64,000 nucleotides of DNA from Auanema rhodensis (Eukaryota; Animalia; Nematoda), in NCBI GenBank assembly GCA_964057225.1, contig OZ059897.1:9796001-9860000 (forward strand), in the 5' to 3' direction. The translations under genes and the position numbers were made by a program. Below, one piece after another: positions 15,283 through 17,087 of this stretch (positions are counted from its first letter, which is position 1; each line of letters starts with the position of its first letter). The notes under the pieces were generated by a model that made no database searches, was not told where the DNA came from, and saw nothing but the letters and a program-made list of their open reading frames with translations.

Positions 15283-17087
<1,805 letters not shown>

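Follow-up and report, generated by a model that had tools for sequence, protein, structure and literature searches.

A beta-tubulin gene of the nematode Auanema encodes tyrosine at residue 167. This tyrosine is probably the naturally fixed, species-level wild-type residue of a housekeeping-type isotype that is predicted to bind benzimidazoles poorly, and a second beta-tubulin of the same genome is the candidate sensitive partner. The worldwide diagnosis of benzimidazole resistance relies on three beta-tubulin codons, 167, 198, and 200, as markers. The gene (the C5 gene) lies in C5:9796001-9860000, a window of 64,000 nucleotides that is the whole stretch of DNA analysed here. Auanema rhodense is free-living and trioecious, with a germline genome of 180 Mb and seven chromosomes (bioRxiv 10.64898/2026.08.27.747507). 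A literature search of limited scope returned nothing that ties Auanema informatively to benzimidazoles or to its own beta-tubulins.

The C5 gene is complete. Nine exons and 449 codons, closed by TAG, occupy positions 17087-15283 of the minus strand, and reading frames, splice borders, and length all agree (Table 1). Exon borders were placed by homology and reading frame only, and all eight introns have GT..AG borders. Seven of these introns measure 42-48 nt, and intron 5 (16079-16223) measures 145 nt. An unusual GTTAAA donor opens intron 6 (15846-15887), and intron 4 ends in a TGAG acceptor. The model was searched exon by exon rather than as a joined protein, and codon counts were summed per exon. 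Pfam Tubulin (PF00091) matches exons 3, 4, and 5 (E values of 5e-17, 2e-11, and 7e-8), and Tubulin_C (PF03953) matches exons 6 and 8 (2e-6 and 1e-15). By its sequence, with a GTPase domain, a C-terminal domain, the signature motif, an intact frame, and an acidic tail, the gene is a beta-tubulin of the Tubulin/FtsZ GTPase superfamily.

Table 1. Positions of beta-tubulin features within the window and of the beta-tubulin loci found in the genome.
Feature	Position	Strand	Reading
C5 beta-tubulin, exons 1-9	17087-17031, 16982-16874, 16829-16603, 16558-16430, 16386-16224, 16078-15888, 15845-15750, 15705-15519, 15473-15283	-	Placed from reading frames and GT..AG borders
Exon 4	16430..16558	-	Residues 132-174; GGGTGSG signature (GGGTGSGMG), Q134, S165, Y167
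Codon 167	16451..16453	-	TAC (Tyr); a single-nucleotide difference from TTC (Phe), the codon of the C6 gene
Codon 198	16315..16317	-	GAA (Glu), susceptible-type; read in exon 5
Codon 200	16309..16311	-	TTC (Phe), susceptible-type; read in exon 5
Acidic, isotype-specific C-terminal tail	15286..15355	-	Ends ...GESYADQE; unlike the C6 tail (...EATADEEGELDGAEGEANYTEDYE)
Putative promoter elements	17296..17364	-	Some 210-280 bp ahead of the ATG; local pattern reading only
C5 beta-tubulin locus	inside C5:9796001-9860000		SSY167, TAC
C6 beta-tubulin locus (L028)	11.527 Mb		SSF167, TTC
C7 beta-tubulin locus (L029)	6.078 Mb		NTY167, TAC
C7 beta-tubulin locus (L030)	5.953 Mb		NTY167, TAC

Upstream of the C5 gene, the sequence resembles a promoter of cell-cycle type. 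An ATTGGCC box (reverse CCAAT) occurs twice in identical form on the minus strand, 38 bp apart, at 17340-17334 and 17302-17296, and beside this pair on the same strand is an E2F-like GGCGCGCAAA at 17364-17355. A TTTCAG acceptor stands 14 nt ahead of the ATG, as trans-splicing would predict. The gene is flanked by one gene at 18000-20400 on the plus strand, which by its motifs looks succinyl-CoA:3-ketoacid CoA-transferase (OXCT/SCOT)-like, and by another at 13600-14800 on the minus strand, presumably acyl-CoA-binding-domain/enoyl-CoA isomerase-like, again judged by motif only. The ORF of the neighbouring gene had no exact match in other assemblies, a set free of near-identical genomes.

A preliminary description of this DNA had read residue 167 as Tyr from the minus-strand codons GAT AGA ATC ATG TCT TCC TAC TCT GTT GTT, and residues 198 and 200 as the susceptible-type E and F. 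All three codons were confirmed. Exon 4 aligns to residues 132-174 of beta-tubulin chains in the PDB, which places its TAC at codon 167. The top PDB matches of this exon are all beta chains aligned over that interval, the best being C. elegans TBB-2 (6e88), which reads SSF167 and to which exon 4 is identical save for residue 167. The C5 gene encodes Tyr at codon 167 in a beta-tubulin of S165 type, alongside E198 and F200, and the other pocket residues that were checked are all usual (H6, Y50, Q134, S165, L240, R241, and M257). An assembly or base-call error, with TTC as the true codon, is highly implausible: the 449 codons contain no frameshift or stop, a T-to-A substitution is atypical of long-read errors, codon 167 is TAC at two other loci, and the C5 locus is single-copy in the assembly, with no alternative haplotig.

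Those other loci came from a search of the genome assembly (180.9 Mb, 112 contigs) with exons 4 and 5 of the C5 gene, after which the C5 exons were aligned to each locus. Four beta-tubulin loci were found: the C5 gene, one on C6, and two on C7. E198 and F200 are present in all four, and Tyr167 is present in three of the four, encoded every time by TAC. The C5 and C6 genes have S165 and are the two housekeeping-type genes, of the tbb-1/tbb-2/ben-1 class. In Ascaris, isotypes E and F, which are mec-7/tbb-4-like, are distinguished by N165 (PMC9374697), and the C7 pair is therefore probably of the mec-7/tbb-4 class. The strongylid scheme of isotype 1 and isotype 2 probably does not apply to the Auanema lineage.

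The C6 gene is intact and has F167, E198, F200, and Q134. Over the core of the protein (residues 1-426), the C5 and C6 genes differ at 22 positions, two of which (Y167F and V236I) stand on the pocket list of the docking paper. The intron layout of the C6 gene is unlike that of the C5 gene: exons 2-3a and 3b-5 are fused, and a 45-nt intron follows codon 103. Codon usage in the C5 gene is strongly biased, with an Nc of 36.7, TTC/TTT counts of 22/0, AAG/AAA counts of 15/0, and a GC3 of 0.49 in a region of 33% GC. The corresponding values for the C6 gene are 21/2, 14/0, and 0.46, and because it is as biased as the C5 gene, codon bias does not tell which is the major copy. The bias of both genes is of the type seen in highly expressed genes, and we infer high expression of the C5 gene from codon bias only.

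The two C5/C6 copies were also compared codon by codon. On INDEPENDENCE and the age of the changes, the C5/C6 duplication is old and strong purifying selection acts on each copy, as judged from 121 synonymous and 21 non-synonymous differences among 384 compared codons. These counts and the differing intron positions together indicate an old duplication, strong constraint, and no recent conversion; a recent duplication of, or conversion between, the C5 and C6 genes is ruled out on the same two grounds.

The C7 genes lie ~125 kb apart. Their exon-4 region (L029:1501-1629 and L030:1501-1629) is 98% identical in nucleotide sequence, compared with 77-87% in other blocks, which indicates that this region was homogenised by gene conversion and that the two C7 Tyr167 codons represent one event. 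The conversion tract spans codon 167. Exon-4 nucleotide identity to the C7 genes is 0.76-0.77 for the C5 gene and likewise 0.76-0.77 for the C6 gene. The C5 exon is no nearer to the C7 genes than the C6 exon is, so its Tyr167 was not copied from them, and gene conversion from C7 was rejected as its source. On these sequence comparisons, Tyr167 arose at least two independent times in this genome. For Tyr the C7 genes favour TAT (11 of 15 codons in one and 6 of 8 in the other), yet at codon 167 they have TAC, a single substitution away from TTC, the preferred codon for Phe. This points, if only weakly, to a derived F-to-Y change at the C7 residue.

The preliminary description had left two options for the C5 locus, intrinsic insensitivity or a resistance allele. 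Insensitivity is favoured by the presence of Tyr167 in two further paralogues, its independent origin, and the free-living habit of the species, and the allele option is unlikely. If it were correct, TAC would be a segregating resistance allele that either was favoured by benzimidazoles in the environment or in agriculture or emerged in culture, and TTC would be the common allele of the species. One nucleotide change converts TTC to TAC, at no fitness cost that could be measured in C. elegans, and among wild C. elegans resistant ben-1 alleles are numerous, perhaps as a result of selection by benzimidazoles in the environment (PMC6224181). These points are countered by the Tyr167 codons of two other beta-tubulin genes in the same genome and by an apparently free-living organism that seems to lack the history of drug treatment found in parasites. 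Natural resistance in C. elegans, moreover, arises in the sensitive, dispensable paralogue and not in the housekeeping ones, whereas here the paralogue with F167, E198, and F200 is intact. We consider a segregating allele improbable and infer that Tyr167 of the C5 gene is fixed in the species.

Residue 167 was then tallied in other beta-tubulins. A word search with the 125-aa exon of the C6 gene gave Tyr167 in ~30 of 120 partial beta-tubulins, and a scan of metagenome contigs with P0003:1-156 gave Tyr167 in 13 of 80 environmental loci; these eukaryote-wide tallies were made in bulk, and some of the fragments or loci may be mammalian. None of the 80 loci in the contig scan is of nematode type, and that scan serves only as a eukaryote-wide background. 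The word search yielded fragments only, two of which are nematode-type (P0003 and P0004, both from metagenome contigs). No relative of Auanema was among the matches of either search. In the PDB, the 'Tubulin beta-1 chain' of 6tis, 7quc, and 7qup reads NTY167; we take this chain to be from Drosophila. Judged by these sequences, Tyr167 is an ordinary, tolerated natural state across eukaryotes.

Among nematodes, every beta-tubulin in the examined literature has Phe167, in contrast to Auanema. F167 is present in C. elegans mec-7 and tbb-4 and in all isotypes of H. contortus (PMC9143322), and in seven of seven ascarid isotypes (PMC9143322, PMC8406161). A limited literature search found no published report of wild-type Tyr167 in any nematode. 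Both nematode-type metagenome relatives have F167, and one of them (L047) has Y200 as well. This environmental nematode beta-tubulin (L047:4804-6780, on a 13.4 kb contig of ENA metagenome ERZ26858887) is very near to the C5 and C6 genes, and its combination of F167 and Y200 is the pattern of Caenorhabditis TBB-1/2. Related free-living nematodes seem to use either pocket position, 167 or 200.

The commonness of Tyr167 in diverse eukaryotes irrespective of drug history, seen in both tallies and in the solved chains, bears on a further explanation, in which the residue is natural and fixed in the C5 isotype but neutral for benzimidazole binding. The isotype would then be drug-sensitive, and Tyr167 would reflect drift or an optimum of microtubule dynamics. 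In agreement with this, docking and dynamics in Ascaris gave no clear effect of F167Y, and F167Y found in the field did not go with reduced efficacy (PMC9374697, PMC9143322). The C5 gene also retains E198 and F200, the two residues most closely associated with binding. The closest tested background, however, is C. elegans BEN-1, which is likewise of clade V and S165 type, and there F167Y alone, introduced by editing, makes worms as resistant to albendazole and fenbendazole as a deletion of ben-1 does, and it carries no fitness cost (PMC7473882). In strongylids and hookworms, too, F167Y is a canonical allele of resistance. A neutral Tyr167 is unlikely, and given the Ascaris results, the residue may leave sensitivity unchanged in some backgrounds.

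The reading we favour is that of a fixed Tyr167 with reduced benzimidazole binding. Phe167 would have changed to Tyr (TTC to TAC) in the Auanema lineage and would afterwards have been held by strong purifying selection. Tyr167 lines the benzimidazole pocket. Because it abolishes sensitivity in strongylid isotype-1 as well as in C. elegans BEN-1, the C5 isotype is predicted to bind these drugs poorly. In C. elegans, insensitivity is predicted for the essential and highly expressed TBB-1 and TBB-2, in which Tyr200 is natural, and the worm is made benzimidazole-sensitive by their F200 paralogue BEN-1 (PMC13262929, PMC9143322). The C5 gene would reach through residue 167 what TBB-1 and TBB-2 reach through Tyr200. 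The C6 gene, with F167, E198, and F200, is a candidate ben-1-like sensitive subunit, and whole-animal sensitivity may be set by this paralogue.

A wider scenario concerns the repertoire as a whole. Three of the four beta-tubulin genes would have moved to Tyr167 by at least two independent TTC-to-TAC events and one gene conversion, in the absence of drug, driven by colchicine-site or benzimidazole-like toxins of the niche or by altered microtubule dynamics. We think this scenario unlikely. If true, the shift would leave the drug a single point of action, one paralogue of susceptible type, or the worm would be intrinsically tolerant.

Tyr167 is probably normal in several isotypes of this clade V nematode, and a 'resistance' residue could thus be a feature of a lineage. 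Marker-based calls of resistance consequently need a baseline for isotype and species. Auanema offers a tractable free-living system for asking how far Tyr167 alone lowers sensitivity in a native protein, and at what cost, and whether one susceptible paralogue, the C6 gene, dictates the drug response in the manner of C. elegans ben-1. Should Auanema prove naturally tolerant, it would exemplify, in the absence of drug, the evolutionary path followed by treated parasites.

Several known systems resemble the C5 gene in part. The strongylid and hookworm isotype-1 F167Y allele and the engineered ben-1(F167Y) match it in the TTC-to-TAC change, in tubulin class, and in E198 and F200. The strongylid and hookworm alleles are drug-selected polymorphisms of parasites, whereas in Auanema, apparently a free-living species, Tyr167 also occurs in other paralogues. 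The 'Tubulin beta-1' chains of 6tis, 7quc, and 7qup share an identical 14-residue segment containing NTY167 with both C7 genes, and the presence of NTY167 in these solved chains indicates that microtubules can function normally with Tyr167. Unlike these N165/T166 chains, the C5 gene is of the S165/S166 type of nematodes, and only Phe167 is given for that type in the examined literature. The testis-specific bt-D of ascarids, with wild-type Tyr200, is likewise a nematode isotype with a resistance-type residue, fixed in bt-D regardless of drug phenotype. It is tissue-restricted and low-expressed, whereas the C5 gene, apparently a housekeeping gene, has its tyrosine at 167. C. elegans TBB-1 and TBB-2 share with the C5 gene the S165 type, strong codon bias, and a resistance-type pocket tyrosine in the reference sequence, and in both species such genes coexist with a paralogue bearing the full susceptible triad, in Auanema the C6 gene. 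They differ in the position of that tyrosine, which in the C5 gene is at 167 rather than 200, with F200 retained.
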